In this document: piece after piece, positions 24,498 through 62,900 of the stretch
Layout of the letters: each line of letters opens with the position of its first letter
Numbering within the stretch: position 1 is the stretch's first letter
DNA from: Cyanophora paradoxa CCMP329
Lineage: Eukaryota; Plantae; Glaucophyta
Length of the DNA stretch: 64,000 bases
Assembly (NCBI GenBank): GCA_004431415.1
Contig: QPMI01000408.1
Coordinates: 930,001-994,000, forward strand
Direction: 5' to 3'
Notes under the pieces: model-generated
Databases searched by the model: none
What the model saw: only the letters and a program-made list of their open reading frames with translations
What the model was told of the DNA's origin: nothing
Made by a program: the position numbers and the translations under genes

Positions 24498-25578
24498 CTA
24501 TTGGGAGGGCTGACATGCAGAGAAGTCCAACGCAGGACCTGGGTATGTGGAATTCCTCAGTTGCTCTTCCATCAGAGCGATCGAAGTCTTCCGCTTGCGC
24601 GAGATGAAGGTCTGGTTCATTCTTGATATCGTCATCACCTTCGTCATCTCCTCAACGCTGAAGTTCGCGATATCGAGTGCAATCCAGTCGACTTCCGCAG
24701 GCCAAACAGGCGAGCTCATGCCACTATCAATCTCGTCCAGAGTAGCTTCGAAGCAGACGCAGACCCAATCGCCGCAATTAATCACTCCAGTCTGCAGCTT
24801 GAAGCCAGATGGAACTGCAGATGTGCAGCTATAATCTGGGAAAAGGCGTTGTAGCTCTAGCTCTAGGTCTTCCGGCATGTCCTCTCCTTTCGAATCGAAC
24901 CAGCGAATTTGCTTCACCTCCTTCATGATGGACATCAGGCAAAAATGCTCTCCAAACCCGCGGGGGTCAACGGTGTCCCCTGTACTAACTGGACACGAAA
25001 AGCAAACAGCAGTACCACCATTCAACATAAGGCTCGCTGCTATATCTGGAGTGTTCAGGCTGCGTAAAGACTGCAGCAGCTGCTGCTCGTGCATCGGGTA
25101 GGCGAGCATCACGCGCTGACGCAAGCGATTGTACTTCTTGGACTTGAGAGCCGCAGATGTCATGCAGGCAATGTGAACGTCCTGCGTGTATCATATCAGA
25201 ACGCTATGCTCGAAAGACCAGATCTAGCATATTCATGATGCTCTAACCGTTAGCCAGTCCTTGGGAGTGGGGACTGTCTGTTCTGTATGCGTCCGGCTGG
25301 TCGTCCTCCGCCGCGCTTGATTCACCTTTCCGCGCTTCGCAATTGGAACTCCGCGCGCGTTCTCCATACCCTAGGCAAAAGTGAGTTGGAAATACAGACA
25401 CCCAATGGCAGACGCATGAAGGGACCCACGTCTCTTGCACCGTATCCAACAGCAGTAGTAGAGCCGGCAGCTTCGCGTCCGGCCGCGATCGAGACCGACG
25501 AGCTGTGGCTCGGCGATCAGCTCGAAGTGTAGAAGAGCTTGAAACAGCGGCAGTTACAAACCTTCTCTTGGGAGGCAT
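24498..25578 (-). CDS. Stand-alone spliced Ulp1/SENP-like (C48) protease
   Basis: GEHFCLMSI..IRWFDSKG...KLQTGVINCGDWVC shows complete H-D-Q-C residues; short upstream exons start MPPKRR (NLS-like). Confidence 0.8.
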
Positions 25579-25649
25579 CACACGGCAGGGACACTACGGC
25601 AGATGGTGAAGACGAGCCCGACCGATCGCAGCAACCGTACGAGACCCGG

Positions 25650-25850
25650 CGGATCCGACGTGCTGAACTGTTCAGCACGGGGGGGGGGTAGACCAGCGTA
25701 CGGGTACACGTTATGACTATCCGTCCCTCGCATACGGACGCAAAGGCCAGGAGTCGCCCCTCCTAAAGCACACATCCCCTACACGCGTGCGAAGCCTGCA
25801 TAGTGCGCAGCAGCGCAGGCCCTTCCGCGGGCACTTCCGCAGGCATGACC
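25650..25850. promoter_or_regulatory. ~200-bp hairpin/G-run cassette, copy 2, ~70 bp upstream of the Ulp1-like ATG
   Basis: Diverged direct repeat of 12986-13190; palindrome CGTGCTGAAC-T-GTTCAGCACG at 25659-25679. Confidence 0.5.
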
Positions 25851-29159: not shown

Positions 29160-29790
29160 AGCTCCCCGCAGCGGCGCCCCTCAGCGGCGGCCCATCTCTC
29201 GCTTGGTGCGGGCCTCCCTGCACTTCGGCGCCGCGCTTCGCGCGACGGGGCGGGCGCAGGGAGGACCTCTCGCGGCGCCCGCGCGGCGACGGTGGCCGGG
29301 GCGAAGCGGCGGTTCATCTCTCGCTTGGATCGCGCATCCCCGCCCTTCCGCGTCGCGCCCCGCGCGAAGAGGTGAGCACAGGCGACCCGACTCGCGGAGC
29401 ATTCGCGGCAGGGACGGGGCGGCCGGGACGCAGCGGCGGCCCATCTATCGCCTGGTGCGCGCTTCACCGCCCTTCCCCACCACGCCCCGCGCGAGAAGCC
29501 GAGCGCAGGCGCCCCGAATCGCTGCGCCTTCGCAGCGGGGCAGCCGGGGCGCAGCGGCGGCTCATCTCTCGCGTCGTGCGCACCTCCCCGCCCTTCGACG
29601 CCGCGCCCCGCGCGATAGCGCGGTTGCAGGGAGCTCGACTCGCAGCGCCCTTGCGGCGGGGGCGGTCGGAACACATCGGCGGCCCATTTCTCACTTCGTG
29701 CACGCCTCCCCGCCCTTCAACGCCGCGCCCTGCGCGACTAGGTGAGCGCAGGCGACCCTACTCGCGGAGCCTTCGCGGCGGGACCGGGAC
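29160..29790. repeat. GC-rich ~120-bp degenerate tandem repeat
   Basis: GCGGCGGCCCATCTCTCGCTTGGTGCGCGCCTCCCCGCCCTTC variants about 5 times; same family at 35965-36910. Confidence 0.75.
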
Positions 29791-35531: not shown

Positions 35532-35965
35532 ACAATATGGTAAGCCGCCGGAAGAGAATCTGACCGGCGCCAACCAAATGGTTCGGGCTGAAGCTTGGCT
35601 ATTCGGTACCCGTAGACCAGCCGACCCGGACGGCTGCTCGCATCGCTTAGACCCAGGTTCGAATCCTGGGAGTGAGTCTTTTTTACCATCTTGCTTTCAG
35701 TCCGTGGTACGAAAATCTTTAGCTAGGACATGGACTACAAAATAGTAAGCCGCCCGAAGATAAGCTGACCCGCGCCAACCAAATGGTTCGGACTGAAGCT
35801 TGGCTATTCTGTACCCGTAGATCTAGACCAGCCGTCCCGGACGGCTGCTCACATCGCTTAGACCCAGGTTCGAATCCTGGGAGTGAGTCTTATTCGCCAT
35901 CTTGCTTTCAGTCCGCGATGCGAAGATCTTTAGCTAGGACATGGACTAGAATATAGTAAGCCACC
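35532..35965 (+). ncRNA. Tandem ~208-bp units, each with a tRNA-like T-arm/B-box minihelix
   Basis: CCCAGGTTCGAATCCTGGG at 35652-35670 and 35863-35881, flanked by GCTC(G/A)C...GTGAGT; copy 1 is followed by T6. No D or anticodon arms. Confidence 0.5.
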
Positions 35966-37192
35966 CGGGGCGCAGCCTCGGATCATCTCTCGCCTGGTGC
36001 GCGCCTCCACACCCGTCGCCACCGCGCCCCGCGCGACGGGGCGGGGGCAGGGATCTCGACTCGCGACGCCCGCGCGGCGGGGGCGGCCAGAACGTAGAGG
36101 CGGCCCATCTCTCGCTTGGTGCGCGCCTCCCCGCCCTTCAGCACCGCGCCCCGCGCGACGAGCTAGGTGAACGGAGGCGACCCGATTCGCGGCGCCTTCG
36201 CGGCAGGGCCGGCGCGGCCGGGTTGCAGCGGCGGCCAATGTCTGGCTTGGTGCGGGCCTCCCCGCCCTTCTTCGCCGCGCCCTGCGCGACGGGGCGGGTG
36301 CAGGTAGCTCGACTCGTGGCGCCTTCCCGGCGAGGGCAGCCGGGACGCAGCGGCGGCCCCGCTTTCACTCTGGTTCACAGCCCCCGCTGCCCCGCTTTCA
36401 CTCCGGTTCGCAGCACCGGTGCAAGTTTCGCTCCCACTATTCGCAATTGCCCCGCTTTCACTCCAGTTCACAGCCCCGGCTGCCATATCTTAGCTGTGAC
36501 CCCCAAACATGCAAGTACGGCGGCATCCACTGCGAGGGGCACGCCACCAGCCCACCCGGCTCACAACGCCCCCCACTGCCCCATGGCCACCTCCGTGGTT
36601 CGGGGCCGGTAACATTTGCTCACATCGCAGTGCCATCCATGGCCGGAACGTAGAGGCGGCCCATCTCTCGCTTGGTGCGCGCCTCCCCGCCCTTCAGCGC
36701 CGCGCCCCGCGCGACGAGCTAGGTGAACGGAGGCGACCCGATTCGCGGCGCCTTCGCGGGAAGGCCGGCGCGGCCGGGTTGCAGCGGCGGCCAATGTCTC
36801 GCTTGGTGCGGGCCTCCCCGCCCTTCATCGCCGCGCCCTGCGCGACGGGGCGGGTGCAGGTAGCTCGACTCGTGGCGCCTTCCCGGCGAGGGCAGCCGGG
36901 ACGCAGCGGCGGCCCCGCTTTCACTCTGGTTCACAGCCCCCGCTGCCCCGCTTTCACTCCGGTTTGCAGCACCGGTGCAAGTTTCGCTCCAACTATTCGC
37001 AATTGCCCCGCTTTCACTCCAGTTCACAGCCCCAGCTGCCATGTCTTAGATGTGACCCCCAAACATGCAAGTACGGCGGCATCCACTGCAAGGGGCACGC
37101 CACCAGCCCACCCGGCTCACAACGCCCCCCACTGCCCCACCTCCGTGGTTCGGGGCCGGTAACATTTGCTCACATCGCAGTGCCATCCATGG
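35965..37192. repeat. GC-rich repeats with a 556-bp tandem duplication
   Basis: ORFs 36138..36368 and 36694..36924 are nearly identical with a 556-bp offset; internal CCCCGCTTTCACTC sub-repeats. Confidence 0.9.
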
Positions 37193-37434
37193 CCCTGCTC
37201 CCGGCACCCAGCCGGCGCCCCGCCCCACCGGCCATCCGGCGCCTCGCATATGCTGCCCCCCATCACCTCCAGCGCCCCGCGCCCGCTGCCACCCAACGCC
37301 CTACGGTTCCACTGCAGGCTCCAAGGTAGGAAGGACGGCGGTCGCAACATTGGAAAGCACGCCAGCGGCCAACCTCCGCCCCCCACTAGGGCTCAGACAC
37401 AGCCATCCACCAAATATGGACTGTATTCAGAGTA

Positions 37435-38160
37435 TCACATGTTCTTCGGACCCAGGACACTGATCTCTAAACGAGGAAGTAACTGAGTCGCAAGGTCTCT
37501 GACGGGCATGGAAGCATCAAGACGAATCACGGGTAAAGTGCGACTGGACTCGAGAGAGAATATCCAGTCACTATAACGTGCGTGGAGTCCTGGAATAGTA
37601 CTGAGAGCTTCGTGATTATCTCCACGGGAAAGAGCTCTCTCCATACAGATGCCAGGTGATACATCTAGTGATACGACAGCAAGTGGATCGTGAAATGAAA
37701 GAGATGCCTGAATTTCTTGCAGCAAACCACGCTCCGCATCCGTGAGGTAACCACGGGCGTACCAGTACTCTGCAAAGATTTCCTGTGAGGAAAGATGGCA
37801 GCGCTCGACGAGACCAACAAGCGGGCGATCGTGATAGGCAGAACTACATGCATTCAAAGCTGACAGTTGCTGTAAGTGGGTTGAATGGGAAAGGAGCGCT
37901 CGAAGTTGCATGCCAAGTACGGCACCAGGTTGCGGGCCGCCTTCCGCAAAAATGCCAGTCAACCATGGTTTCCATAGATGCAGAGGCTCGGGAAAGATGC
38001 GAAACTTGACCGCGCAGTTTACTTCCGCGGCGACTACCATCAGGTCGGAAATGAGCGTGCTTTTACCCGCTCCGGGAGGCGCTTCGAACGCTATATACGG
38101 GGGAAGCATCGCCTTGCGATCCACGCGTACGGTCGTCGGTGCGGTGTCTACAGATTGCAT
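37435..38160 (-). CDS. Deoxynucleoside kinase (dNK family), intronless
   Basis: YIAFEAPPGAGKST (P-loop), FPEPLHLW, LVERCHLS..IFA, P.AVVSLDVSPGICMERALSRG (lid). Confidence 0.88.
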   Translation of the reverse strand: MQSVDTAPTTVRVDRKAMLPPYIAFEAPPGAGKSTLISDLMVVAAEVNCAVKFRIFPEPLHLWKPWLTGIFAEGGPQPGAVLGMQLRALLSHSTHLQQLSALNACSSAYHDRPLVGLVERCHLSSQEIFAEYWYARGYLTDAERGLLQEIQASLSFHDPLAVVSLDVSPGICMERALSRGDNHEALSTIPGLHARYSDWIFSLESSRTLPVIRLDASMPVRDLATQLLPRLEISVLGPKNM

Positions 38161-38299
38161 GATATAATTATACTACTATGTGATGAAAATGACATTCGAG
38201 GGGTACAGTCGCAATTCGAAAACTTCGTAACTGAGGACCAAACAGCACCTGAAGCTGCCTATAGTAGTAATTTCTTGCCATTATAAGACATACGGTACA

Positions 38300-41200
38300 T
38301 CGGTTCTCGCAAGACCTTTCAGCTGAAGCGTGGACGGATCATCCACGCATCACGTCAGGTGCCATGCATAGCGAGCCGCGCGAGTTGTGATCTGATTCAA
38401 CTGTACGAATGCAGAACGGAGGCCCCAAAATTGTGAGCCGGTTGCCCATGGGGTACGTCGGGTACGGCAGCTGAGTTGAGTAAAGGAAAAAGAGGATGCA
38501 TCGGATTAATGGACATCATCAGATCAACCACGTCGGAACGCAATCGATCCGCCCAATCACATTTATCACTATTACGCGTAAAAACAGGAAGGGTCCCTTC
38601 CGCAATCATGCTGTCAATTATTGACAAAAACATGCATCGTCCTGCTCCAGAATTACTGCGTGGAATACCGCATCAGCCACTGGGGAACTGCATTTTAAAT
38701 ACGAGACATATCAGATGTAATAAAGGCGGACCTCACTGGAATTAGGTTAGGAGAGACTGTAGCGGAAAGCAACACGTTCTGCATTCCCATGTCGTAGATA
38801 CGGGCAGACATTACACCAGCTATCGATAGTCGCATATCCGGAGGAACAAGCATGGCCGCAGTGGATGCAGGTGAGGGATGCGACGAGTTACGATCACAGG
38901 TTCCTTCAGGTGGCAATGAACCCCCCAAAGCTGCACTACACGACGCCTGCTGAAAAGCAGCTGACAAATTCCGTGGTGGAAGAGCGTGGGTCGTGTGGGG
39001 TAAGAGAGAAGTCGACGAAGTAGGCGTCGTCCGATCACGAGGTACACTGGAAGGCATCGCTGAAGAGCTCGAGGGAAAGGATGCAGCGGATCGCTTGTTC
39101 GTCGACGTTAAAGTAGACTCATTGCGCTTACGCTTTGGAGTCTTGGGAGATGCACGCGGTGGGTCGGTGTGAGATACACGCGGGGGGTCGGTAGACGGAG
39201 CATCAATGCGTGTACGAGTACCCGCAGCGCCAGAGTTGGGAGTCGATGCAAATTTCTCGGCCAAGGTGCGCTGCTCTTCTACCACCAGTTGCGGTTTAGC
39301 GACTTCAAAAACAGACGTGCCCCAAGCGATATGAAGATTGTCTGACGGGACACCAATCCGCGTGGCCAGTGCACGGAGCCGGGCATTCTCCCGTATATCC
39401 GACGGATTCGGAGCGAAGTACAACCAGCGGTCGAGTGACGGAGTGCTGCACATTGCAATGTCCGGTAACTCGGAGACGTCGCTGTCGGAATCCATTGTAC
39501 CCAGTGGGATCGCAGATTGGTGCGCACGTCCTTTGCCTTTCTTCCGTCTAGCCATAGGGTCACGCAGTACATTGGTGAAAATGATGTCCGCAGATGATCG
39601 AACCCGACTACATGCGACATACGCCATGTTGTAGGTGAAAGCGCGTGACAAATCAACGACTATCTTTGACAGTGTGAGGCCTTGACACTTGTGAACGGTT
39701 ACAGCCCACGCCAGACGAAAAGGGAACTGAGTGCGAGAAGGAGCCGAACTTGAAGATTTTGCCGCATTCGTCAAACCAGGAATCACTTCGTGCTCAGTTT
39801 GAGTAGGCGGTGCTGAAGACTTGTCGTGGATAACTGGTTCGTTGGATATGTCACGCTCAGACGGCTCAACACGTACGGCCTGGTAATCAACACCGGCTAG
39901 TGTCACTTTCGTACGCCCGCGCTTCCTGCCGACTTTGTCGTCGTCAAAAGCCACATACATGGCAACTGGAGAATTCTTGTCAAGTAGCCGAACAGTCGAC
40001 GAAGCTGTAGGTACTGGACCGTCAAACTCCCATCCAACCAGCGTCCCCAGCGCGCCATTTACAAGACCATCGTGCGTGTCCTCATTGATGATCATCATAA
40101 CCCGCGAGCCCAAGCAGAAGGTGAACTTCGCCAATAAGAGGTCGCCATTTTTATTCTGCACCACGAACGCACAAGCTTAAAAAGCAACTGATACACTGGC
40201 GGACATGGGTTCGTACCTCAACCGGTTCAGCTGGTTTACACGTTTTGGATTTGTGATCGTACTCTCCTTCATCGAAAGCCTCAAGTGTGATAATCGGAGC
40301 CAAATACCGACGGGACGTTGCAAAGAGACGATCATTGTTGTAATTCAGTACTTCTCTGTTGCAAGGGAAGACTCGCAACGCTGTTTCCCAGGCGGGGGAT
40401 GCCAGTTCGCAAGCCAGTGCAGCATACCCCCGACGATTCTCCTCGGGGTTCACAGATCTGCACGGTGCGTTCACAGAAAGGCGAGCGGGCGGTGCAATAC
40501 AAGGATGTAATGGTTTCAGAACGTACCTGGACAGAATGAATTGCTTATCACGGTCATCAAATTCTCCGACTCGTAATCGCAAACATGTGTCACGCCACAT
40601 GGTGTCTCCAGCTTGCCTGACGACCTCATCGAGGAAGATAGGGTGAAACAAAGACAGCCACAGGTGAATATCATCAACCAGTTCGCCACTGCGCTTGAAG
40701 GTACGCCACATCCGTCTTTCGAAAATGTTGTAAATCCGTTTCTCCTGCACTGGCGGAAGTTGGAAGAAATCCCCGAAGCACAGGATAGATTTCCCTGCGA
40801 ACGGCTCCGCCACCTGGAAGATCTCCTGTAACCGCTGATTGATTCGAGGAAAGTTCTTGCCGCCAACAAAGCTGATCTCGTCAATAATGATAAGTTCGAC
40901 ATCACGGAACCTTGCATTCAATTGGCACGCTCGGGCGCCAGATAAAGGATAGAATGTATTTTTTTCGCCGTGTTTGGGAGGAGCCCCAAAAGCTAGCACA
41001 GATGACACGGTGCTACCTCCGATGTTGAAGGATGCCACGCCAGACCAGGACATGAGTAATATGCCGCCATTGCCACACGGTTGCTGCATGTTTGCGTGGT
41101 CACGACTCCAGTGGAGCATGTACTTAACAATGGTTTTGATAAGAAAAGATTTGCCAGTCCCGCCTGGACCAACACACGCAATGTGCAGAGGCTGCTTAGG

Positions 41201-46830: not shown

Positions 46831-47031
46831 ATCTACCGTCTTGATTATGCCACGACTTTTACTGTTCTCGTTGCGCTCGTCTCACGCTGCAATTGCAGTC
46901 GACTCGTCGCTCGGAATAGAGGTCTGATGAGCGACGTAGGGGTACACAATACATCGAGTTTCATATCATCATTACCTACGGCTTAAATGACATCGACTAT
47001 GCTGCCGCTTGCCGACCGAGAATATATATCC

Positions 47032-48925
47032 ATGGGTGATGCTGCAGCAGATACATTGCCGCCTTCGAAACGTAGGCTTGTCGCGCACCGCATTCGAGAC
47101 GCAAGCTGATTGAACTTGCAGGCCAGCGTTCGATCACTAAGGTGAGACAACCGCAACTGTGTTTCTACGGATCATGCGCGGACGGCGGCAGACAAGTCGA
47201 CATCTGATATGCCGCAGATTGCCGCTCGTCAAGAAGCATCAATGATGAACGCAGCAGCAGAGAGAGCGATGCCTTCGCAACGTAGGCTGCTTGCGCACCT
47301 CATTCGAAACGTAGGCTGATTGAATTCGCAGGCCAGCGTTTGATCAGCAAGGTGCGACGCCACCGAAAGTGGTGCTGCTCGATTGCGATGTTCGAGGCGC
47401 AGGGCGACCGGATCCTGGAAGTCCTGTCCATGGTCACAATCGGTGACGAGTGTGCGGGGCGTAGGGACGTAGGCACATTGACGGAGCTGCCGATTCCTGC
47501 CGGGTATGACCTATTGTATCCGGAAAACGAGTTCGTTCAATTCTCGATCCCATCAATTGTGACTTTCCCAGTAACTGATCGAAAGAAGGCCTGCTGAGTG
47601 CAATATTGAAGTGAAATTCTTTGTGCCCCACGCAGAAAAGAAGGTAACATTAAGTTTCTCTGTCGAATATGTGAACCGAAACTAATTACATTTCGTCCCC
47701 ATCGCAGACATCGTTACACACATGGCCGCGTGGATCCTTCAACGACGCGTTTAATTACTGGTGTATGAAGTACAACTTGCGCAAAGGGGCGTTCGTATTT
47801 GGAGGGAAACAAATACGGCCTGTGGACAGTCCGGGATGCGTTGGGGTATGCAATGGCGACACCGTTATATACGTAGAGGAGAGCAAGCTGACAGCTGAAA
47901 GTCTGAAACGGTGCGCGCTGAACGTGTACATACCGGATGGTGATCTAACGTGGGTGCCGGTCCTCGAGCACGGCCGCAGGGAGGAAGAGTTTGATTCGTA
48001 CGTCGAGTGTCACGATATAATGAACTCGCAATTCCGATTATTTACGCTTGTTCAGAGTCGACATTGAGAGTGCGATGGAGGTGGTGATCGTGGGCGACAG
48101 CGGGCACCAAGACATGAGGATGGTGGAAATCCTCTGATCTATATACTCGTTATTCGAGTGGATCTGTATCTTGTTATTCAAACGTTAGCGTGTGCATCGC
48201 AGGGGCTGAAAGTGAGTCGGGCGACCGGAATGTACTGGATGCCAGCGAGGCAAAGGTTCGTGTATGTACTTGATCGGGCCGCCGAGCACGAATAACGGAC
48301 GCACCTGCTTTGCAGCGTGAACCTGCGGATGACCGTGATGGGAACGCACGATTCTACACTACCTGCAGCATTTGAGTTGCACATGGTGCCAGGCCAATCG
48401 CGGGCCACGATACGTGATGTATATCTACGACGAACTGATTATACGCCGGTTCACAGAGTGACATAGCCGTGCTGATTGATCGACCTCTATCCGAGTCCAT
48501 GCGGGTGTACGTTGATAAAATTATCGTGCCCCATAGGCACGTTTTCTCCTGCCATATGGGCGTCGCATGGATATACCACGTTACATGTCCCAATCATGCC
48601 CCTCAGGCACGTGTTTACAGGATATGACGCGGTTGAATTCGTGTACAAAGGGTGCTTGCTAAAGATAGGACCGACTCCGGCTGAAATGGATATGAAGCAC
48701 GGTGATGAAATTAAGTACGTGCTTCTTGTATTTATTGCGTGCGAATCACGATGACACCTTTCCAGGGTAATACCATACAATAGAGTTGTCGGCTCGACGC
48801 TCGGCTGTGGTCTTCACGATTTTTGCTATTGCCTTCGACTACAACTGATGCAAGACGACGCCCTCCAGTACCCTGCCTCTGCTATCACCGACCTTGGTTC
48901 CCGCTAGGGCCTTGATCGTGAACTT
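47032..48925 (+). CDS. Spliced protein with at least two SUMO-like (Rad60/Esc2/NIP45-type) domains (end approximate)
   Basis: AFVFGGKQIRPVDSPGCVGVCNGDTVIY (~47790-47872) and EFVYKGCLLKIGPTPAEMDMKHGDEIKY (~48635-48719) match the SUMO C-terminal pattern F.F.G..I....TP....M..GD.I. Confidence 0.65.
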
Positions 48926-49907
48926 GACCCCGTCGTACTGAGCGCCTCTATCTCAATACATTGAGTGCACCGCTCTCACTGTTTTCAATTGCCCCGCTTC
49001 TACTACCCTCCAGTGCTCTGTGCTCATACACTCCGTCCATCCCGCCTTAGCTCCCAGCGCTCGTGCCTGTACTACCCTCTAGTGCCCGCGCCCTCCTGTA
49101 CCCCGCCACGGGCGCCCCACCTTAGCTGTGCCCCGCCCGCACCCTCCGGCATCGCGCCCTGGGTATTTTGCATCAGCCGCGCTCCGCCCGCACCCTCCAT
49201 CACCCCGCGCCGGGCACATCCCACTGTCTATAATGCGTAGTTTACATGAGTATATTTGGTTGGAAAGGGTATTCAGATTCAAGGCACGAAAAGTCAAGCG
49301 GACTTTCCGTCGAGCGTCACGACCCTAGGCCTCCAGCCGGCGATCTGGTGACAGTAGTACTTCAGGCACGAAAATCACAGTGGACTTCAACCTCTGCAAC
49401 ATCCCTTTTGCATCTGTGCGCCAGACGCTAGCTCACAAGGACCGGTGCGTTTCACGTCACCAATCGTGTGATTGGTATGGTCGCAATGTAACTTTTTTGT
49501 CGCTTGCGTTTCACGGACCCCCCCCCCCCCCCCGCCCGCCCCCCCCCCCACCCCCCGGGTACCGATCACCCTCTCTATACCTAAACTGCCTGTTCGCACG
49601 TTCATGGGCAAGCGGAGGTGCGCATTATCTCGTGCTTTAACTTCTTCTGCGTTTACATAGTCACAACGATCTATACTTGGTCTACGTTCTGACGATTTCG
49701 CGTGCAGACCTTGCAAGTCATCTAGTGTCACAAAGACAGGTGTAGCACAAGATACGTCTTCTGACTCCGAAGATTGCACGCCTGCTAGGTGCGCATCTCG
49801 GTCTCCATGCGAAGCTGAGTTCCCATATGCACGTCTCAATTGCTGATCGTAGTCTACTAGTGCGTCCGTGCGCGCACGCTTGTCTGCAGAAGCTGTGCAT
49901 ACGTCGT

Positions 49908-50215
49908 CACCTCAGTCCCCTGGCTCTGCGCCCGTGCTGGCCGGGTTCGCATGCACGCGCCCTTTGCGTACGCCACTCCAGACCGCATTGCAACCTGACG
50001 CCGAACGAACAGAGCCGCCCATATATCCATGGATTCCCTGCCTGAATCTGATCATATGTCGACACCTCAGTCCCCCGGCTCCACGCCCGGGCAGGCTGGG
50101 TGCGTATGCGCCCCACGCGTGTGCCCTCCATGACGGCATTGCAACCTGACGCCGAACGAACAGAGCCGCACATATATCCATGGATTCCCTGCCTGACTGC
50201 GTACTGGTGGAGTTT
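49908..50215 (+). repeat. Tandem duplication of the F-box gene 5' end
   Basis: GCATTGCAACCTGACGCCGAACGAACAGAGCCGC..ATATATCCATGGATTCCCTGCCTGA occurs at ~49985 and ~50136. Confidence 0.85.
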
Positions 50216-52056
50216 TTTCGAAGCCTGTCTTCCGATCGCAAGTCGGCCGTGGCGTTCTCCCAGTCGTATCAACGCGCGCGTCGCATTTTCCTGTCTTCCT
50301 CAGACTCAGTCCCTGTGTACGGGGACCGTGGTGTTGTGTTCGACCTGGACGCTGCACTGCGCGAGCTTGGCTACGTTGATCCGCGCGAGATGGTCGACGA
50401 TTTGCAAATGTCTGATATTAATGATGTCCTTCGCCGCTGGGTGTACCACCTCCTCACCCAGGAGAGCAACTTCTTGCGCATCGTGTCCACCGCATTTGCA
50501 GATCCTGTGTGGCGGCGCCCGTACATCGCTGACTTTCTTCACCGCGTCATCCTCTGGGCTTTCATGCCAGAACCTTCATCATCTCCCATCCCCGATGATC
50601 GGCGTGCTCTTGCATTGTCTACTAGCTCACTCGACGTTGAGCATGCTCGCCCAGTACATGTAGGATGGCTACGTTTGGCAATGACAACCAGTGCCAAGAC
50701 GCTGATTGTGGACGACCTTGCGGCCGAAGATCTCGGCGTAATAGACGCTGCTCACGCGGATATGCCAACAGCGCCAGGCATCTGCATCCCTATCTACCGC
50801 AGCCTCCCGTGCGCAGCCACAGCGCTGCTTCTTTGCTCGGCCAAAGTACTTACCTAATCTCTCGCACTACGCGCAGGCTTGTCAAACCGTCTGCCGGGCC
50901 TTTTCGCATCAATAAACTTGTCATTTCCGGTACTGCCATCGCGTACCACTACGCTACCAACTATAGCCAACTCGTCGACGCCCGGCTTGAAGCCAGGGAG
51001 GTTATCGTTCGCGGATCCCACAACACCTTACAGGACTTGCCGCCGCTGGCCCGGCCCCCTGTCATTCTGCGGCTTGAGTGCACTGAACAACCGTACCATG
51101 TGGAACGACTCTTCACATTGCGTGTCCCACACATTCATATCATTCCCTCCGCACGTGTGTCACCTGCATGGGCCTCGCACATGCACATCAACCTCGAGCC
51201 CCGCTGGGTAGGTGACGGCAGCAAGCTCCAAGGCCCGTACCAGACAACGCATCTTGAAATTGAGATCCCAACTTCGCCTGTTGGTTGCATGCGGATGCAG
51301 TCCCTGCCTCGGTCCCTCGTTGTACTACGTTGTCCCGTTTCGGATTGTTGCCTGCAACCTGTAGCCTCTGGTATAGCCTTGCTTCCGCATCTCATATCGC
51401 TCGATCTCTCTGCGGCAGCCCTGTTCGACCATAGATATAGGGCCTCAGACATCGCTCGCTTTGCATCAGCCATCTCTTCTTCTACCCTTCGTCGCATTGT
51501 GATCCCCGTTGTATGCCCCCAGGGGGTCGAGTGCCTTGTTATCGTCAATGCCGTCGCGAATCTTGCGCGCAACTGCCGTGTCCTGGAGTCTCTCGGTCTC
51601 ATCGGCGGCATTCTGACGTTGCCAAGGCAGGTCCCGCGCTATGCGGCCGCTGCGGTGGCCGCAGCGTTTGAGACGTCCACCAGCATTAACGAGGTCTTTC
51701 TCGATGTCCCATCACAAGAGAACACCGTGTCCCGCGAGGTTGCAGCCTTCTTCCGAGCCTACATTACAGCTTTGCACGAACGCAGCACGATCGCCGATCG
51801 GCTACTCAAGGAGAAACGTGATATCGCCGCGGCCGGAGCTCGCGTCTCCAAGGCATGCTCGCAGCCTGGCGAGGATGGCTTTCGTGGTCCGCTCGTTGAG
51901 GCTAAAGCAACCTATGAGGCTGTTCAGGCGGCAGAGACGCGGACCACCTTGCTCAGGCTTCGCGATTCCGAGCTAGCTGATGAGATGGCCCGTATACAGC
52001 AGGCCTTCAGTCCCTTCGAAATCGTCGATAATGATGTGATTGTTATTGATGACTGA
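50180..52056 (+). CDS. F-box-like / leucine-rich-repeat protein, one intron (50809-50876)
   Basis: Starts MDSLPDCVLVEFFRSL (F-box LP..I...IF pattern); LRR-like LPRSLVVLRC, LPHLISLDLS, CRVLESLGL. The 68-nt GT..AG intron joins ORFs 50180 and 50665 in frame. Confidence 0.65.
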
Positions 52057-52967
52057 TATATATATGCTTCCTGCAAATAGGCTATGTAGATGCTGTTCTA
52101 ATTTAGTTTTGGTATTCATGAAGCCGCACTGATCGCACTCCTCCTGCAAATTGGTGCCAGGGTGTCCGACCATCTTGCATTTCAAGCTCGGGCATCTTCT
52201 GCTTCAGTCGCCGCTGTATTTTTTTAGTTGCAGCCAGGAGGCAAAGGACTTCTTCATCCGGCACATGGATTCAATCCATGCACTTGATTAGGCTTCTCGG
52301 GTCTCACGCGCATCGCACTCGGAAGCTGCAGGGCTGTAGTCTAGCCTGTATCTATATAGCTACCTGCACTTCTTGAGCATGTCTCTTTTCGTAATTGTGA
52401 TCAAATGATTTGTAGAGTACACGAACTCGCTGTCTGTAGCACACATGCACACACTCTCATTCTTTTGTAGCTGCAGGCTTAAGGTCCAGATCGGGTACTG
52501 TAGCTACTGTACTTGGGATACTGGAGGCGACGACGTATCTCGTGATGTACTCCGCCATGCCTAGCGGCCGTGGCATACCCTGAAGATCGCTGTTGCCCTT
52601 GGAACTTGCTATTAAGCTCATATTATACACGGTACTGTAGGCCTGCTGCAGCGCCGCAGCACTACGAGTGAGCGTCATTGTCGTCGTGATTGTGAGTCGT
52701 CAGCGCGTGCACACCTGCTGCACGCCGTCCGAAAGGCCAGGACGGTGCGTGTTGCTGTGTGCAGCTTCGTACCGGTCCTTGTCGTTCGGCGATGGGCTGC
52801 GCATCTCGGCGTCCAAGTGAGCAGCTCTCGTGCGCGCATTTCCTCTTCGCGCGTGATTTGCGCACCGAGACCGCTTCATTGCCGTATGCGGTGCGATATC
52901 AGGCTGGTCACGGCTGGTCACGGCAACCTCCTTTCGAAGAAAGTACCAGTATTAATATTGTCAAAAC

Positions 52968-54830
52968 GATGAGGCGAAGGAGGAAGAGCCTACCCCACAC
53001 GGGCCCCCTAGCCGGCTTCAGGGTTGCAGCTGCCCAACCTACGGGAGTCTTTCCAACGCCAATTGTTTCGAAGTATTCGGACCCTTTTACACTTCGGCAG
53101 ACTACGGCCGAGGTCGACAAGTGGGACTCTGAGTTGCGATCGCGCTACTTTACGTATACTTTGGTGTCAACTTGTCTCATCGACTAACGAATTTCAGCTA
53201 TATTAATGGTTTCATGTTCGCGCGTTTTCGTGCTCTCGTTTATGCAATCTTCAGGCATCAATGTAATACAGTACCCGTTTTGACGGCCGTTCTGGTAATG
53301 CCGTTACCGTTGCGCGACCGGCTATCGGATTCAGTATGAATTACGTGGTCATCAAGTCTTTTGTTTGAAGCACCCCCTGGATGACTGCAGCTGATTGCCT
53401 CCGCACCGGCGTTCTTTAGTTACCGTGCATTGGGACCTGCAGCTGCTGCGACCGGCTACCGGAACGCGGGTCAAGCTCGCACGAGTACTCGGTAGCGGTT
53501 TCTCATCGCTACCGGCGCAAGGTTGTTAGTTTCGCTGATTGATCAGCTTTGGTTTCATCGAACGGCTACTGGTACATCGGTGGACCGCGTACGTAGTGCG
53601 CACTATCGCCTTGGTAGCGGCCGCAAGGGAGGGAGTACGGCTGATCACGTGCGTGCCAGCGTGTTTTCTCGGCACCCGCCAGTTCCCGCTGAAAGCTACT
53701 TTAGGTCGCATGCTAGCTGCCGCCGTCGAGTCCAGATTCCAACTACTTTCGCGAGCAAGTCATGTGCGTATTGGCGTTGGCATATGTTGAACATCGCGTC
53801 TTCTACCTTACTCTGCTTTAATCGGGCGCATGCGCGTAGAATCTTACGACCTGGTTCTGTCGAGAGTCGTCGCTGTACCTACACTCTGTTTTTGTCAAGT
53901 GTCGTCGCTGTATATCTTGTCACCTGGTTGTTAATTCAAGGATCACTACCACTGGCAAGACACTGTATCGCGCCAGGTAATCCGTGATGCTGACGCTTTG
54001 TTAACTTGACTTATGAGAGCAGTAACAGCTTTTCAAATGGCAACTCTTGTTGGACTTCCTAGGCAATTTATGTATGAATTCCCCTCTTCTCACTCGCACT
54101 TCATGTCATTACCTGCTCCATCGTTTGTGCGCATCTAATGTTCTTGCCTTGGGTGCTGTGCACTGGATGCTGATGTCCTTGTTACCAGGCACCTTGCAAT
54201 CCGCCGATTCAGTACATCGCAAGTAATATATCCCGACCTGCTCATCGCCTAACTGGGACTAGCGCAAGTTTATCCGCGGAGGTGACGTTGCGATGTGCTG
54301 TGCACATCTTTTGCTCGTTCTTGAATTCAGTTTTTGTCGCAGTTCTCCTATAGATGTACCGTCCTTGCGTCATGCACAGCAGCATTCCGTACCGAGCATG
54401 ATTTGCGGTACCATATGGCAGGGGCACATGACACTACACGTGATGGCATTTTCCCATGCGGATATTGTGCCATGGTCCTCGCCGACCGTCCAGCTTGGGA
54501 TGCACACCGTGTGTCCGTGCATCATGTAGGCCGGCTACGTACGTATGGGTCTCAATGCGATTGTTCTCCGGGTCTCTTACCTGAACTGTACGGGTGTAGG
54601 GCAAAATCGTGCGTCTGTCCGTCGGAGCGAATATTCGAATGCGGATAGACAGATATTGCGGACTGCCGATTCCGGTGAGTTTCTTTATTTTGCATTTCGT
54701 GCCTTCTCTCATTCTTAACATATCCGTGCTGCAGTTCGTCATGCATCTAACTCTCGTCGGACCGCGGAACATGCTAGGAGTGCACTTCGAAGTTTTCACA
54801 CCCAGCGTAATCGGTCGCTGGTAGTTGACA
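52968..54830 (+). CDS. Multi-exon C2H2 zinc-finger protein (exon structure uncertain)
   Basis: CTVLASCTAAFRTEHDLRYHMAGAH and FPCGYCAMVLADRPAWDAHRVSVH at ~54355-54525. Confidence 0.55.
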
Positions 54831-55468: not shown

Positions 55469-58400
55469 CTAAAACCATGCAGGCCATCTGGCCCCGTCTG
55501 ATAACAAGCCTTTCAGTTCTTCGGGAGGGCGAAACGCAAATGCTGCGCTGACGGCAGGAGCACAAGTTGGAGATGCCGCCGCAACAATCGTGTCCCGAAC
55601 ATGATCGAGGAGGCCGCCGTTTTTATGCTGGACTACATGCCTGAGATACGAGTACACCTCGTAGGCATTAACTCCCGCAACCCGGGGAGCAGCCAGCAAG
55701 TACTTCAATAAATTGGGGTGTAGTGCAAGGAGACACCCAATCTGGAGTCAAACAGCGTTAAGAAGAACACGTGGAACAAAAAATTAAATCGCCCGAAACG
55801 TACCCGGTACAACACCAAAACACAATCACTCTTCGTGAGGTCGAATGGAAGTTTCTGATCCGGAGGGCAGATTCTTCTTCACAAGCCGGGTACAGGCACG
55901 CCAAGGCGGCCTTCACTTCCGGCCAGAAGCGAATGCTGATCTGCTTCTTGCGAAACGTCCCCCAAAGACTGTCGATCTGAGAGTCAGTCATCTGCATCAT
56001 CTGACGTGCGCCTGCGATCGACATAGACCGTATGAGCATGAGCAGTACTAGGGATTACACAGCGTCAGGTGTACCTTCCTTCTGGATAATCCACAAAAGG
56101 AATTGGACTCGCTTGAAATAGAGTGCACTACTCGAGCAAAAGAGCAGACACAATCTTCCCTGCTCAATTCTGGCTATAGATTCCGAAAGCGACAAGCCAT
56201 TGCATGCGATGGCCGTATACAGTCTCTCGCCGAAGTCGAACATCTTCGAGTTTCGGGAGGCGACAGGTCCGATTCCGGGAGTGGATGCTGCAACAAATTG
56301 CGGAACTGCTGAGCAGTCATCGGAGACCAAACACGTGAAAATGTCATCGATTGATAGCGGAAGCTGCGGAGTGCTGAAATTGGAGCCACTAGCACAAGGC
56401 ACAACTGGTCCAGATGAACTGCCCGTTGATGTAATCATCGGCCCAACTGAACTCTGTAGGGTATCCGCAGATGCAGATAAAGATTTGACCATCCACGCCA
56501 CCCGAGCCTTACGCGACAGAAATTTCAAGGACTTCCGCTCATTTTCCACTATGGTCGACGTCGCTGGTATAAGCTGAACAGGGATCAGAAAATACAAATG
56601 TCGAGCTGGATATCGGGAGACCACTCACCGATAGTGCCTCACCCACGTTTCCGCTTCTGCCACCGGAATGGCCAGGAGGTGTATCCGACTGGGATCCAAC
56701 GAAGGTCATCAAAAAAAACCAAGTAAGAGAATCGCACAGATATGCATTCACCGACAAAGAAACACTGTCAATGTCGCTAGCATCAGCATCCTTCGATACA
56801 ACACAAAGAATCAAACGGGAATCATCGACACATATATATAGAGTAAACTACTCACACGATCAGCACCGTTGTCGTCATCATCGGAATCACCCGTTCTCGC
56901 CCTTTTCCCAGCCTAATATACAAAACACCGCATATTCAAAGGGGAATCATAAATAGTGCGATTGAGTACAACTATTAATCACTCACGCCGCTGGCATCGC
57001 GCCGGGGAACAGTTACTTTGCTTGCTTTCCGCTTTTTGGACGCAGAACGGCCTTGGAGTGCAACCATTCCTTGTGTCGAACCCGGAGACTTTTTGCTACT
57101 TGCACCAGTCGATACACGCGTGCGCCGTCTGTCAGCAGCATCTTCCTTGGACTGATCCTGGTAGGATCGTAGTGAATAATTGAGGATGTTCAAATGGTGT
57201 GATAAATATTAATTGAACCCGCACCGGTGCATCAGAAGATGAACTACAGATTTTATACTTTTTTCCGTCGACTTGAAACTGGACAACTGCAGGATTCGAT
57301 CGTTGGCGGTCACCTGCTCATGTTAAATAAGCAGACACTCGAACAGATTTAATTAAGGATTCCATCAGGATAGGCCCAAAAATCAACCTCACCATCTGGC
57401 TCTTCTCGTATCTTACCACTGCGACGTGAACCAGGTACACTCGCTCCTGCGACACCTTGTTGAATAGCAGCTGCAAATAGGCCAGCAACGATCAACGACA
57501 GATAATTATCGCGTGTTTTTCTACCAAACCTTGGTCGGGGACCCGCACAATGGTCCGCACAATGGGACATGCGAGCACTCCGCGCAGAGAGACGGGCCTC
57601 CAAAAGTTTACTGCCAAGCTTGGGTGACCCGTCGCGGGCTGCAACGCGGCTCAGAACCTGCGAACTTGTCATTGGAATTAATAGACGGGCCAGTTGAAAG
57701 AGCGCACGACATACCGATTTAATGGCATCGGATTGTTGAAGCCCACGCTGACCGGATGAATCATGTAGGCCAACACGAGGCTCGTCGGCAGGAGGTTCCG
57801 AGGATTGCTAGGTAACAGTTGGTGAGAAAATAAAATAAATAACAATAAGCCAAGCAAAACGCATGCAGTCACCAACGATAACAGCATGTCCGAGTACCTC
57901 TGAATCGCGTCCTCATTGCGTGCAATCTGATGTAGATCTGAAATCTGAGAAGTCCATAAACGCGCAAAATATATTAATCATACATTTCAAATGATGCAGG
58001 TCAAAAAACATGAGAACCCACCTTCTCACAAGCCAGGGAATATATGAGCGTCCTCATATTCACGATGTCGTCAGGGTGCAAATGAACTATTAGCAAAATC
58101 AGGAGATATGGAGTGAGACGACACACAACAGTAACCTGTGGAGTAGATACGCTACCACCCTCAGTTTGCATAAATTCGGTTAGGCAACCTGTAACGAGTA
58201 GCTCTGAGTTCACACAAACATGAACACCGCAATCAACGCCTCCTTGACGCGTTGCCTGCAAACAGCCCCCATCAATCGAATGCCTTAAATATTATAATCC
58301 AGCCAGAATGTACGTACTTCGGCTACAACATAGTTGAAAACAAGGTCACCGGATAATATATCGCGAGGTGACCCGGGAAACAGAGCCTTGTCCCGGTACG

Positions 58401-61400
58401 CCGATTGGAAGAACCTGAATCGGATTCACGTTACAGAGCCCCCGTAGTCATATACACAAAGCCGACCTTATAAGCGAGCCCTTAAGGAGACGTGTACATT
58501 TCCGGTCCAAGAATGCGTTCTCGTCCGTACCCATTGAACACACTTGCACAATAGCCGGTCGCAGTCGAGGGTCCGATATTCGTTGGCCGAGGCTACCCAA
58601 ATTGCAGACAATTACGAGAATCCAATGACTGCACATTGATCAGTATGCATGCCGCTGCACTAAAAGAAGGCGAGACGCTTACTTGGGCAGGTGCACAGGA
58701 AACCCAAGAAACTGGGTTTTGAAAATATTCACGCCAGCCTTAACGAACCATTTCCTAGCCCGATCCGATTCCCCGTACCCCGCCTGTGCATAGTCAATAT
58801 CGGCAAGACGGAATAAGGCGATACATGATACACACCTTCAGAAGCACGGTAAAATACGTGTTGAAAAAACAGACACTCGTCGCAGGTACAGAAGCCCTGA
58901 ACGTCGGATCACGCAACTTTTCCATCAAGCAACTATACCGTTCGTGGTCACGGCAACAATCAAAAGCGCATGACGCTGCAAGAAACTGCGTTAACTCACT
59001 GGTGGAAAAAATTCACGACCTCATCAGTAAATTCTTCGTTCGGTCTCAGGGTAGCAATGTCCCGACGTTTGAGAGATCCACTAAGAACCCCATCATCGAA
59101 ACTATAAAGTACTGTGTCTCCGTCCTTCGCGTTCCAATCTGCGCATTCCAGTATTAACTCAGGCGATACAGAACAGTGGCATCACCAAATTCGAGGCACC
59201 CGCAACTGACGTGCCCAATCGCGTGATTGTAGATTTAACAATTCGGATGAATGCATCTTTGGCGACGCGCGACATTTTGCCATCACTACCGTTTGAATCA
59301 TACGTTATCACAGAGTCCCTCCAAGACAAGACGATTCGGTTTCTCTCGGTTAGAATTCCGGATATCACTGGACATTGCAAAGAAAGTAGCTCGGCTTCAT
59401 CTGCGCACGGGTGCGACGACGACAACTTTCGCTCGAATTCAAGACGCAAATTCTTCAATTCGCTGATGCAGTCCAGAAGATGGGTCAGATGCTTGAACCC
59501 AGAACCGATATCTGGATTCGGCGACGACAATAAATGCTGTAGACGACAGTAATCATCCCACATCGATCCGTAAGTAGCCTTCGAGACCTCTTCGATCCGC
59601 GATAATTCAATGAAATTGATGAACGACGCAGCCATCATCTCGACGTGCAGATAGTGTTTCACTCCGTCATCGCGCATCTTCGCTAGTTCCACCACAATTT
59701 CACGGGGCGTCAGTCCCTGTGCAACCCACGACTTGAAGGTCGTCTCTGTCATCTGGCGCATGTTCGACGTGGCCTCGTCATCCAGGAATGACGTGTCGAA
59801 GGCATTAGATGACCCGTACGCAGATATTTCAGCCGCGTCCTCCAAAGTGACTGATTTAGAGTTAAGCAGCCAGTTGAAGGCACGCTCCATGGTACTGTGT
59901 AGATGAATGCTGTACGAACGCCGTTGGGTTAGGACGACAAACTTGTTGAAGGCCTCCGCTGCTTCCCGCAAGTTGTACTTCAATTTGAAGACTGCCGTCA
60001 TAATATTGTTCAGCAACAAGTAAAGACCACAATGCCCTCGGATATTCCAGGGACGTTCCAGAAGATCTCAGGCGGAAACACCGGTTTGGCTGGAAGGAAA
60101 GACACATTCAAAAATAGATGAGAGTACAAAAAATCAAGATACAAGAACATACTGAGGGGTAGCCAATCGTCGCCTTCCCACGGCAACAGATTCGTCGCAT
60201 TCACAACCGCATCGAACGCCCTCTTAAGATCTTTCGCAGCACCCACCGCGCGTTCCATGACGAGTGACGGCAGCTCGAAATCTCCCGCAGGCAAGGACCC
60301 TGCTGAAAAAAGCCAGAGAATTAGAAGGAGTTTGAGCGAAGTGAATCATGCACACCCCCTCCTGTAGTGGGAGCGTCCCTCTCTCCCGCTGGAGCCGCAT
60401 CCGGAGCCAGCTGTAGGACGAATGGATCGGTCTGCAAACCGGCATGCGGAGGGCGCAATCCCAGAGACCCGGTCTCGACGCCCGCGGCCCCCTGCACCAG
60501 GGCGTCGCCCTCAAGACCGCCAGGCAGACGAGAAGGCGCAGACGCCGACGCGGCAACCTGCGCCGTGATCGGCGTAAGGGCAGGCGCCGCAGGACAGCGC
60601 GGCGCCTGCTGCAACATCGAGCACCAGACTCACCGGGTCGGACCCACTCTCGACGCCCACGGCCGCCTGCCCCACGGCGTCGCCCTCAAAACCGCCAGGC
60701 AGCCGAGAAGGCGCAGACGCCGACGCGGCAACCTGCGCCGTGATCGGCGTAAGGGCAGGCGCCGCGGGACAGCGCGGCGCCTGCTACAACATCGAGCAAC
60801 AGACTCACCGGGTCGGTGGCGCTGCCGAGTGTTGGCAGATTTGCCGCAGCAGCGGCACGGTCGTCTGCCGCATCGGGAGCCAGCTGTAGGACGAATGGAT
60901 CGGTCTGCAAACCGACATGCGGAGGGCGCGATCCCAGAGACCCAGTCTCGACGCCCGCGGCCCCCTGCACCAGGGCGTCGCCCTCAAGACCGCCAGGCAG
61001 ACGAGAAGGCGCAGACGCCGACGCGGCAACCTGCGCCGTGATCGGCGTAAGGGCAGGCGCCGCAGCACAGCGCGGCGCCTGCTGCAACATCGAGCACCAG
61101 ACTCACCGGGTCGGACCCACTCTCGACGCCCACGGCCGCCTGCCCCACGGCGTCGCCCTCAAAACCGCCAGGCAGCCGAGAAGGCGCAGACGCCGACGCG
61201 GCAACCTGCGCCGTGATCGGCGTAAGGGCAGGCGCCGCGGGACAGCGCGGCGCCTGCTGCAACATCGAGCACCAGACTCACCGGGTCGGTGGCGCTGCCG
61301 AGTGTTGGCAGATTCGCTGCAGCAGCGGCACGGTCGCCTGCCGCATCGGGAACCAGCTGTAGGACAAATGGATCGGTCTGCAAACCGGCATGCGGAGGGC

Positions 61401-62900
61401 GCGATCCCAGAGACCCAGTCTCGACGCCCGCGGCCCCCTGCACCAGGGCGTCGCCCTCAAGACCGCCAGGCAGACGAGAAGGCGCAGACGCCGACGCGGC
61501 AACCTGCGCCGTGATCGGCGTAAGGGCAGGCGCCGCAGGACAGCGCGGCGCCTGCTGCAACATCGAGCACCAGACTCACCGGGTCGGACCCACTCTCGAC
61601 GCCCGCGGCCCCCTGCACCAGGGCGTCGCCCTCAAGACCGCCAGGCAGACGAGAAGGCGCAGACGCCGACGCGGCAACCTGCGCCGTGATCGGCGTAAGG
61701 GCAGGCGCCGCAGGACAGCGCGGCGCCTGCTGCAACATCGAGCACCAGACTCACCGGGTCGGACCCACTCTCGACGCCCGCGGCCCCCTGCACCAGGGCG
61801 TCGCCCTCAAGACCGCCAGGCAGACGAGAAGGCGCAGACGCCGACGCGGCAACCTGCGCCGTGATCGGCGTAAGGGCAGGCGCCACAGTACAGCGCGGCG
61901 CCTGCTGCAACATCGAGCACCAGACTCACCGGGTCGGTGGCGCTGCCGAGTGTTGTCAGATTTGCCGCATCAGTAGCACGGTCGTCTGCCGCATCGGGAG
62001 CCTCAACAGATGGATCAGGCTCCGAAACAGCACGAGGAGAACGCGCTCTCGGAGACCCCTCCTCGTCGCCCGCCTGCCCCAAGGCATCGCTCTCATCAAC
62101 GATGATGATAATCGGGTCGCTGTCTCCCGGGAAAGGAGACACACGACGCTCGCCGGCCGGTCGCCCGGCAGGCACAGAGGCCGGAGAGCTGGAAGGAGAG
62201 GCGTAGGACCCGGGGGTGGGCACGAGGGGGCGCGGAAGTTCAGCCGACCCATGATCCTCGCCTCCCTCGTTGACAGGCAGATCCTCGGCCCCCTGGCCGT
62301 GCGGGTCTACAGCCGTCGCAGTCGAAGCATTCCCTCCAGACCCAGTAACTCTCGGTAAAAAAGAGCCTGCATCTGATATAATTGCTGTCAATCGCAATTG
62401 CGAAATAAAACGTCAGAAGAGCAATCACAGTAATCAGACAAGTCACCATCGAAAACATGATCATCACCATCAGTTGGTTCCAAAGTAAGGCCACCTTCAA
62501 CAACAAGCTCATCATCATCGAAATCAGCTGGTTTCAAAGGGCGGTTCCAACATGCCAGATTTCGCCGGAACCGCTCCTTATGAAACGCTGCCGCAGGCCG
62601 ATAAAACGTTCAGATATATCAGAATATGCGCTAAGAGAATAAGAAAGAAAAACGACAACTTATTAAATAAATGACGCACCATCAGCGACAGGAGTAAAGT
62701 CCGCAGCGGTTGCTGGAAGATCCTTAGAACTGTCTTCCGCGGCGGCAGCGCTCTCATCGGTAGAAGACGAGCTAAGCGACGGAAAGCACTCGTTTGACGA
62801 AGGAGCAGTGCCTGCAGCGATGATGCTCAAGTCAGTTGCAGAAGGCAGGTCGCGCCGAACACGCTAACAATGTAGAGATTCGCGACCACCTTCGCTAGCG
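55469..62900 (-). CDS. Large multi-exon gene with a SENP6/7 (Ulp2)-like C48 protease domain and acidic N-terminus (boundaries approximate; may be two genes)
   Basis: DIATLRPNEEFTDEVVNF (~59060-59005), ARKWFVKAGVNIFKTQFLGFPV (~58760-58695), SHWILVIVCNLG..PAIVQVCSMG (58630-58530), RQGGVDCGVHVC (~58250-58215). Confidence 0.7.
60368..62010 (-). repeat. Tandem array of exon-intron cassettes (175-bp and 298-bp units, 7 copies)
   Basis: The 175-bp unit is a 99-nt exon (VAASASAPSRLPGGLEGDALVQGAAGVESGSDP) plus a 76-nt GTGAGT..GCGCAG intron. Confidence 0.85.

Follow-up and report, generated by a model that had tools for sequence, protein, structure and literature searches.

A probable low-GC mosaic of separate units around a Helitron-like transposase gene and putative SUMO/ubiquitin-type genes in Cyanophora paradoxa

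The 64,000-nucleotide stretch of the glaucophyte Cyanophora paradoxa CCMP329 (contig QPMI01000408.1, positions 930,001 to 994,000; hereafter the window) contains a Helitron-type Rep–helicase transposase gene (RepHel) lying among genes of apparent SUMO/ubiquitin type. A sequence-only reading of the window had proposed that positions 24,498 to 62,900 form one giant rolling-circle element, in which RepHel would carry a self-contained toolkit for manipulating SUMO and ubiquitin. Our analysis favors a different account, to which we assign a probability of roughly 55%, namely that the tract is a repeat-interrupted, low-GC mosaic island of separate units and not one demonstrated element. The genes and junctions on which this argument turns are as follows (aa, amino acids; ORF, open reading frame; LRR, leucine-rich repeat).

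24498..25581, minus strand: Ulp1 #1, a putative C48-like protease gene, with a 221-aa ORF at 24498-25163 and an upstream ORF at 25243-25581 that starts MMPPKRR
37435..38160, minus strand: intronless deoxynucleoside kinase (dNK) gene, a 241-aa ORF that follows RepHel after 535 bp in the same orientation
38695..45782, minus strand: RepHel transposase gene, with a Cys-rich N-terminus, Rep, PIF1 helicase and a long Ser/Pro-rich tail
45823..45866, minus strand: edge of the RepHel unit and candidate 5′ terminus, the minus strand from 45866 reading AACGTCATGCC
45997..46926, minus strand: gene G1, with exons 46926-46295 and 46201-about 45997, encoding about 246 aa with a C-x2-C...C-x2-H tail
46978..48963, plus strand: gene with two putative SUMO-like domains in a RENi/Rad60-like layout, about 12 exons
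49784..52056, plus strand: F-box/LRR-like gene, with a 5′ exon junction at 49784/49857, an F-box-like ORF at 50180-50857 and an LRR-like ORF at 50665-52056 with a coiled-coil end
54802..54821, plus strand: hairpin at the second breakpoint, whose arms CCAGCG/CGCTGG enclose a loop of 8 nt; its last letters are CTGG, and the next base is T
58004..60019, minus strand: Ulp1 #2, with a 286-aa N-terminal ORF at 59159-60019 followed by putative C48-like exons 59181-58999, 58798-58682, 58639-58472 and 58291-58004

In terms of base composition, the 24-60 kb tract lies at about 50% GC, as compared with a published mean of 67.6% for the C. paradoxa nuclear genome (PMC6704402), and every gene within it has a GC content of 0.46-0.57. 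It is interrupted only where GC-rich satellites lie, at 29.2-29.8, 36.0-37.2 and 60.4-61.9 kb. Since composition is otherwise near 50% throughout, the tract taken for one element matches a compositional island. Its left flank is formed by a GC-skewed long interspersed nuclear element (LINE; RVT_1 at 21911-22453, RNase H at 18935-21259), and its right flank by satellites.

With respect to transposition machinery, the claim that the tract holds one RepHel gene was borne out. Specifically, Pfam gives both domains (Helitron_like_N, E 2e-11, 43566-44099; PIF1, E 2.7e-17, 40151-41287), and the HUH (HAH), two-tyrosine YxxxY (YILGY) and Walker A (GPGGTGKS) motifs are intact. A collinear tblastn alignment with the 1723-aa RepHel P0064 extends over 44588-39574, and HAH and YILGY align with the Rep of that protein. 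The possibility that RepHel is a pseudogene was considered and rejected, as the in-frame stops between its ORF pieces sit in alignment gaps of 60-100 nt, which is the usual intron size here, and are therefore not the mark of a pseudogene. Two introns in the 5′ part (45045-45110 and 45182-45252) are borne out by RNA contigs at low depth (about 2), and the fraction of sampled words of 38.0-47.9 kb present in RNA-type runs was 0.44. Taken together, these observations point to an apparently intact and weakly transcribed Helitron gene in a glaucophyte.

Close copies of this gene did not emerge from our searches. The best match to the 489-aa ORF in a homologue search was 36% identical, the PIF1 ORF reached 32-40% at best against protein representatives (nematode, fungal and other contigs), and the JGI metagenomes contained no close RepHel copy. 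Other traces of Rep consist of one 104-nt transcript that is 84% identical and one fragment in the window itself at 1361-1453 (minus strand). The latter, a relic of a related Helitron copy situated 40 kb away, is a 31-aa fragment that is 81% identical to the Rep core of RepHel. The OTU-like Cys motif that had been read at the RepHel C-terminus found no support, in that neither the RepHel tail nor the ORFs at 38168-38633 gave a Pfam OTU match at E values up to 10, and the OTU-PIF1 proteins P0016 and P0031 align to RepHel through the helicase part only.

The gene next to RepHel had been passed over previously. The dNK ORF matches Pfam PF01712 (E 2.6e-12, 47.4 bits against a cutoff of 27), contains the P-loop GAGKST, finds the dNK 6ybh in the PDB (E 8.6e-4), and resembles RepHel in GC and GC3 (third codon position GC). 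It had no match by exact look-up and no relatives in IMG/VR. The earlier statement that no housekeeping genes are recognised in the tract stands in that none was recognisable among the roughly 50 ORFs scanned, but it overlooked this recognisable kinase. The pairing of RepHel with dNK is the most clearly new item at the locus. We propose that the two belong to a Helitron-like unit of at least 8.4 kb, which would run from 45,866 to 37,435 on the minus strand. Within such a unit RepHel, judging from its intact motifs, would drive rolling-circle transposition by nicking the element and unwinding it, and dNK may supply deoxynucleoside triphosphates to RepHel-driven replication.

On the far side of the unit edge lie genes of a different character. 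The gene at 46978-48963 is real, spliced and expressed, its transcript running from 46,978 to at least 48,963 in RNA contigs from two runs (X15, depth 59; X17, depth 21). Its introns, 51-93 nt long, all have GT..AG borders, and two RNA runs show a micro-exon of 17 nt at 47981-47997 (GAGGAAGAGTTTGATTC). The encoded protein contains the pattern F.F.G..(I/L)...P......GD.I twice, in each case closing a ubiquitin-like (Ubl) unit, and the two exons that close these units carry FVFGGKQIRPVDSPG..GDTVIYV and FVYKGCLLKIGPTPAEMDMKHGDEI. As for all the spliced genes considered here, profile searches were made exon by exon. The 36-aa exon at 48605-48712 aligned with the expected part of the Pfam Rad60-SLD profile (SLD, SUMO-like domain) at E 0.044, with 14 bits against a cutoff of 23.8, and a PDB search reached SUMO2 at E 0.94. 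The tandem SUMO-like gene of the sequence-only reading is thus upheld as a spliced, expressed gene in which a Ubl pattern occurs twice, but the Rad60-SLD match is below threshold and involves one exon; two SUMO-like domains are weakly indicated. The last unit is not followed by a di-glycine, and the protein would therefore not be conjugated. A DNA contig of 3.1 kb and an RNA contig, both from other loci, match this gene only over the short pieces 47782-47812 and 48222-48258. The genome thus holds a diverged, expressed SUMO-like paralogue at another place.

The neighboring gene G1 is covered by RNA contigs at depth 18, with an intron at 46202-46294, and gave no Pfam match and no recognisable family. 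It is arranged head-to-head with the SUMO-like gene, the two starts being 52 bp apart (46926-46978), and the intervening gap looks like a bidirectional promoter region. Judged by RNA contig depth, G1 and the SUMO-like gene are transcribed about 10-30 times as strongly as the RepHel 5′ part.

The third gene of this group, proposed earlier as an F-box/LRR gene, is likewise expressed, and RNA contigs show that it is spliced at its 5′ end (junction 49784/49857). Its assignment is consistent with an F-box-like start (LPDCVLVEFF..), a 463-aa ORF, and ESM-Atlas leads at 0.88-0.92 to F-box/LRR families, including FBXL18-type clusters. The profile test failed, however, with no Pfam F-box or LRR match at E values up to 10, and the ORF had no homologue among 5.8 billion proteins. 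An AF2 model of the LRR ORF made without alignments was unusable (pLDDT 42), the C-terminal coiled coil being its only confident part. We therefore retain an expressed gene whose F-box/LRR identity is weakly suggested. In comparison with SCF F-box/LRR adaptors of the FBXL type, the similarity lies in the N-terminal LPD..L...F followed by leucine-rich segments, together with the Atlas leads to F-box and FBXL18-type families; the differences are the missing Pfam match and homologue and the unusable predicted structure.

Such intron-rich, spliced and well-expressed genes with promoters of their own raise the question of whether they are ordinary single-copy host genes (of Rad60/Esc2, F-box and SENP type) among which a Helitron and a LINE have inserted. 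They are single-copy at 80% over the stretch compared below, and the arrangement of the two SLDs follows the universal RENi family (Rad60/Esc2/NIP45-NFATC2IP; PMC549199), with two tandem C-terminal beta-grasp-like units following a repeat-bearing N-terminal region. Unlike members of that family, however, the window gene is very divergent (the Rad60-SLD value of E 0.044 in one exon), is low in GC, lies in a repeat island and has diverged paralogues. Further points against host-gene status are a GC content 17 points under the genome mean, the lack of any homologue of the F-box/LRR ORF in the protein search above, and the lack of any homologue of Ulp1 #1 outside Cyanophora. We accordingly consider this explanation very unlikely.

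The key evidence on how these genes relate to RepHel comes from public sequencing runs, the DNA and RNA contigs of which were compared with the window over 43,900-49,880 at 80% likeness. DNA contigs from two runs (X5 contig 21 and X2 contig 15) track the window to 45,866 and then diverge, and the 30-nt loose end past this base is an exact match to 54,792-54,821 on the minus strand. The window's own junction between 45866 and 45867 is retained in X5 contig 20. On the minus strand, base 45,866 is reached 131 bp downstream of the G1 stop, and the first RepHel ORF follows after a further 84 bp. Because some contigs connect this base with the reverse complement of 54,821 instead, the block 45,867-54,821 (8,955 bp), made up of G1, the SUMO-like gene and the F-box/LRR gene, is present either way round with respect to RepHel and is therefore a separable segment; seen from the block, RepHel may lie to one side or to the other. 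The junction of 45866 with 54821 may reflect an inversion of 9 kb or a RepHel unit in a different position, the two being equally possible, and no inverted repeat was found at the two breakpoint sites. This result cuts both ways, as the joint at the RepHel edge is separable, yet RepHel and the block are neighbors in both states.

With respect to the second breakpoint, the hairpin at 54802-54821 has a 6-bp stem and is modest in stability (dG -6.3 kcal/mol, z -2.0). Sites where a hairpin ends in CTGG with a T after it turn up roughly every 15 kb in this DNA, and candidates of this kind are found only at 35828 and 35617 (minus strand) and at 54821 (plus strand). As far as its letters go, the 54821 site is of the form of a Helitron 3′ end.

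The same runs provide information on copy number and variation. About 1% of positions in the DNA contigs depart from the window, whereas the RNA contigs show no difference from it, and the 14 DNA runs all share only about 0.75 of words. In a bubble at 45279-45369 in X2, the window's variant accounts for 150 of 630 (about 24%), and the depth of the region is about 1.8 times that of the diverged paralogue contig. RNA contigs that are identical, alongside DNA contigs that diverge by roughly 1%, could mean that a single allele or copy is expressed or that the strains differ. The depth and variant figures agree alike with alleles, with strains and with a small number of nearly identical copies.

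In terms of element boundaries, neither a TC...CTRR pair nor short terminal inverted repeats were found enclosing the gene set or the RepHel unit. The edge at 45866 reads AACGTCATGCC and not TC, and no inverted partner was found for it. With regard to further copies, nothing else in two genome runs covers 43.9-49.9 kb at 80% likeness or above, apart from SUMO-like paralogue pieces of 31-37 nt and the 104-nt Rep transcript. The search for termini and copies by which a single element might be recognised thus yielded no termini, and no second copy at this likeness over 43,900-49,880. Between dNK and the rest of the tract, moreover, lie satellite arrays and a tRNA-like tandem repeat, which together with the satellite closing the tract are given here.

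29182..29782, no strand assigned: GC-rich 122-bp satellite, kin to the array at 35985-37194
35532..35967, no strand assigned: 211-bp tandem repeat in 2.1 copies, whose plus strand includes a tRNA T-arm-like GGTTCGAATCC
35985..37194, no strand assigned: GC-rich satellite with periodicities of 131 bp and about 556 bp, abutting the dNK stop codon
60394..61937, no strand assigned: GC-rich 473/175-bp satellite that closes the low-GC tract

The 211-bp repeat at 35532-35967 was not called by ARAGORN or Rfam. It forms a strong 8-bp hairpin, and on its minus strand a hairpin followed by CTGG and then T occurs at 35828 and 35617, making these sites weak candidates for a 3′ end. Outside the tract, the window also contains a 2.7-kb inverted repeat (2623-5351 and 8885-11607, 96.5% identical) that encloses very GC-rich tandem arrays of up to 84% GC, with a 712-bp tandem repeat at 6067-8761 inside the same region.

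The two genes that had been taken to bound the element, one on each side of RepHel at a distance of 12-13 kb, were described as stand-alone Ulp1/SENP proteases. For Ulp1 #1, the ORF at 24498-25163 has His, Asp, Gln and Cys at canonical spacing (H+17 D, Q+6 C), and ESM-Atlas features lead to Peptidase_C48 at 0.96 and 0.95 (22 of 30 matches). It had no Pfam match and no PDB sequence match, and a structure predicted without alignments was unusable (pLDDT 33). Ulp1 #2 has at least four exons with motifs in the right order (RRDIATL..FTDEVVNFF, HWILVIV and QGGVDCGV). Its Cys exon alone matches Pfam Peptidase_C48, at E 0.065 and below the 20.7-bit cutoff, and a Cys occupies the position expected for the catalytic Asp. 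The earlier description is therefore supported by the motifs of both genes and the Atlas C48 leads for the first, but no Pfam match rises above threshold and the second gene has no clear Asp; Ulp1/C48-like identity is weakly indicated for the pair. Transposon-borne Ulp1/SENP C48 domains, as in Ginger and the Mutator-like KI-MULEs, are similar in that C48-like domains stand beside mobility genes and in the canonical spacing seen in Ulp1 #1. Here, in contrast, they are separate genes 12-13 kb from the transposase gene and fall under the Pfam threshold, and Ulp1 #2 departs at the Asp.

The sole sequence relatives of Ulp1 #1 are six C. paradoxa gene models (EukProt EP00741) on five contigs, which places it in a family of at least that size. 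Reverse transcriptase and RNase H of the flanking LINE lie directly downstream of it, and a 185-bp direct repeat (12980-13161 and 25644-25828, 86% identical), which may derive from a tandem LINE 5′ end or be simply a small repeat, flanks the LINE and Ulp1 #1 together. Adjacency, common orientation and enclosure by this repeat are what one would see if Ulp1 #1 were ORF1 of the LINE, as it may be; its GC content and GC skew, however, are unlike those of the LINE body.

Taken together, these observations leave the proposal of one giant rolling-circle element spanning the tract unsupported. No enclosing termini or second copy were found, a breakpoint separates RepHel from the block, arrays interrupt the tract internally, Ulp1 #1 is multi-copy on its own beside a LINE, and the supposed cargo is transcribed from promoters of its own. 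Nothing that we observed speaks positively for a single 38-kb Helitron bounded by the two Ulp1 genes.

A smaller association between RepHel and its neighbors deserves closer consideration. RepHel, dNK and the 9-kb block, perhaps along with Ulp1 #2, may move or duplicate together as a composite Helitron-like element or a RepHel-duplicated unit, of which the window would hold a copy with the internal block inverted; we regard this as a tentative possibility. Equally tentative is the more specific proposal that such a composite exists in a few copies of about 99% identity, and that the junction of hairpin-CTGG with AACGTCATGCC is a joint made by RepHel between a 3′-end-like signal and its own 5′ end. 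Several points favor such a link and weigh against a mosaic of separate units. The breakpoint may be an inversion within a larger element, in both arrangements of which RepHel adjoins the block, and the alternative arrangement orients the SUMO-like gene, the F-box gene, RepHel and dNK alike. The alternative junction, in which hairpin-CTGG is followed directly by AACGTC, resembles a Helitron 3′ end and then a 5′ end. Low GC is common to all the genes of the tract, and RepHel is the sole mobility gene recognised within it. The depth of about twice that of the paralogue, together with the minority variant identical to the window, means that near-identical copies holding both RepHel and the block may exist, and no 3′ end was found for the RepHel unit. 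Cargo of this general kind also has precedent, in that a survey made with HELIANO found Peptidase_C48 (C48), OTU, UCH and FBA_3 (a domain associated with F-boxes) to be stably included in some families of Helitron-like elements (PMC11417382). Set against these points, the gene set has no termini, terminal inverted repeats or TC...CTRR pair around it, no second copy appeared at 80% or above over the 6 kb compared, and the depth pattern is explained equally well by alleles. Moreover, the genes that would be cargo have their own bidirectional promoter and far higher expression, satellites part Ulp1 #1 from RepHel, and Ulp1 #1 belongs to another multi-copy family.

The character of the island also invites comparison with viral insertions. 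Large DNA viruses commonly carry F-box, Ulp1-like and dNK genes as accessory genes, and the island, standing out by its low GC within a GC-rich genome, could be what is left of a different large insertion, mobile or viral (a giant endogenous viral element, for instance), into which the Helitron and the LINE inserted later. Giant endogenous viral elements have been reported in C. paradoxa (PMC12344493). On the other hand, the ORFs scanned included no viral hallmark gene, integrase or recombinase, neither dNK nor the 286-aa ORF of Ulp1 #2 has relatives in IMG/VR, and the genes carry many spliceosomal introns. This origin is in our view improbable, though somewhat less so than that of ordinary host genes.

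We therefore return to the mosaic as the preferred description of the island. In addition to the Helitron-like unit of RepHel and dNK, it would comprise the 9-kb block as a second unit, with three expressed, intron-rich genes that appear to use their own promoters and would produce G1, a protein that is not conjugated and has its two SUMO-like domains laid out like those of Rad60/Esc2/NIP45, and an F-box/LRR-like protein. A third component would be the two divergent Ulp1/C48-like genes 12-13 kb to either side, one of them multi-copy and beside a LINE. The SUMO/ubiquitin-type genes would then be fast-evolving families that recur in mobile, low-GC DNA of the C. paradoxa genome, and their nearness to RepHel is no evidence that RepHel moves them. 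The idea of a SUMO/ubiquitin toolkit serving as a counter-defence module is pure inference.

With respect to known rolling-circle transposons, the locus resembles the Helitron-like elements HLE1 and HLE2 (PMC11417382) in combining Helitron_like_N with PIF1, in its intact HUH and Tyr motifs, and in having accessory genes both up- and downstream. It is unlike them in its boundaries, as the 5′ TC and 3′ hairpin with CTRR of HLE1, or the 12-16-nt terminal inverted repeats and 3′ stem-loop of HLE2, were not found here, where the edge instead reads AACGTCATGCC. It also differs in holding a dNK and a two-SLD gene; our literature search found no paper joining Helitrons with a deoxynucleoside kinase, and none joining them with SUMO-like-domain proteins.

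The biological meaning of the locus depends on which of these accounts is correct. If RepHel does carry the SUMO-like and F-box genes, it would represent a transposon with a whole protein-tagging countermeasure, going beyond the single captured C48, OTU or F-box-associated domains, and if the composite element is real, Cyanophora Helitrons would carry SUMO-mimic and E3-adaptor cargo along with a nucleotide-salvage kinase. In either event, the structural variant that is placed to the base where the RepHel unit borders the block offers a concrete handle on the true ends of the element. Under the mosaic that we favor, divergent gene families of SUMO/ubiquitin type would turn up repeatedly in that part of the Cyanophora genome that is mobile and low in GC.

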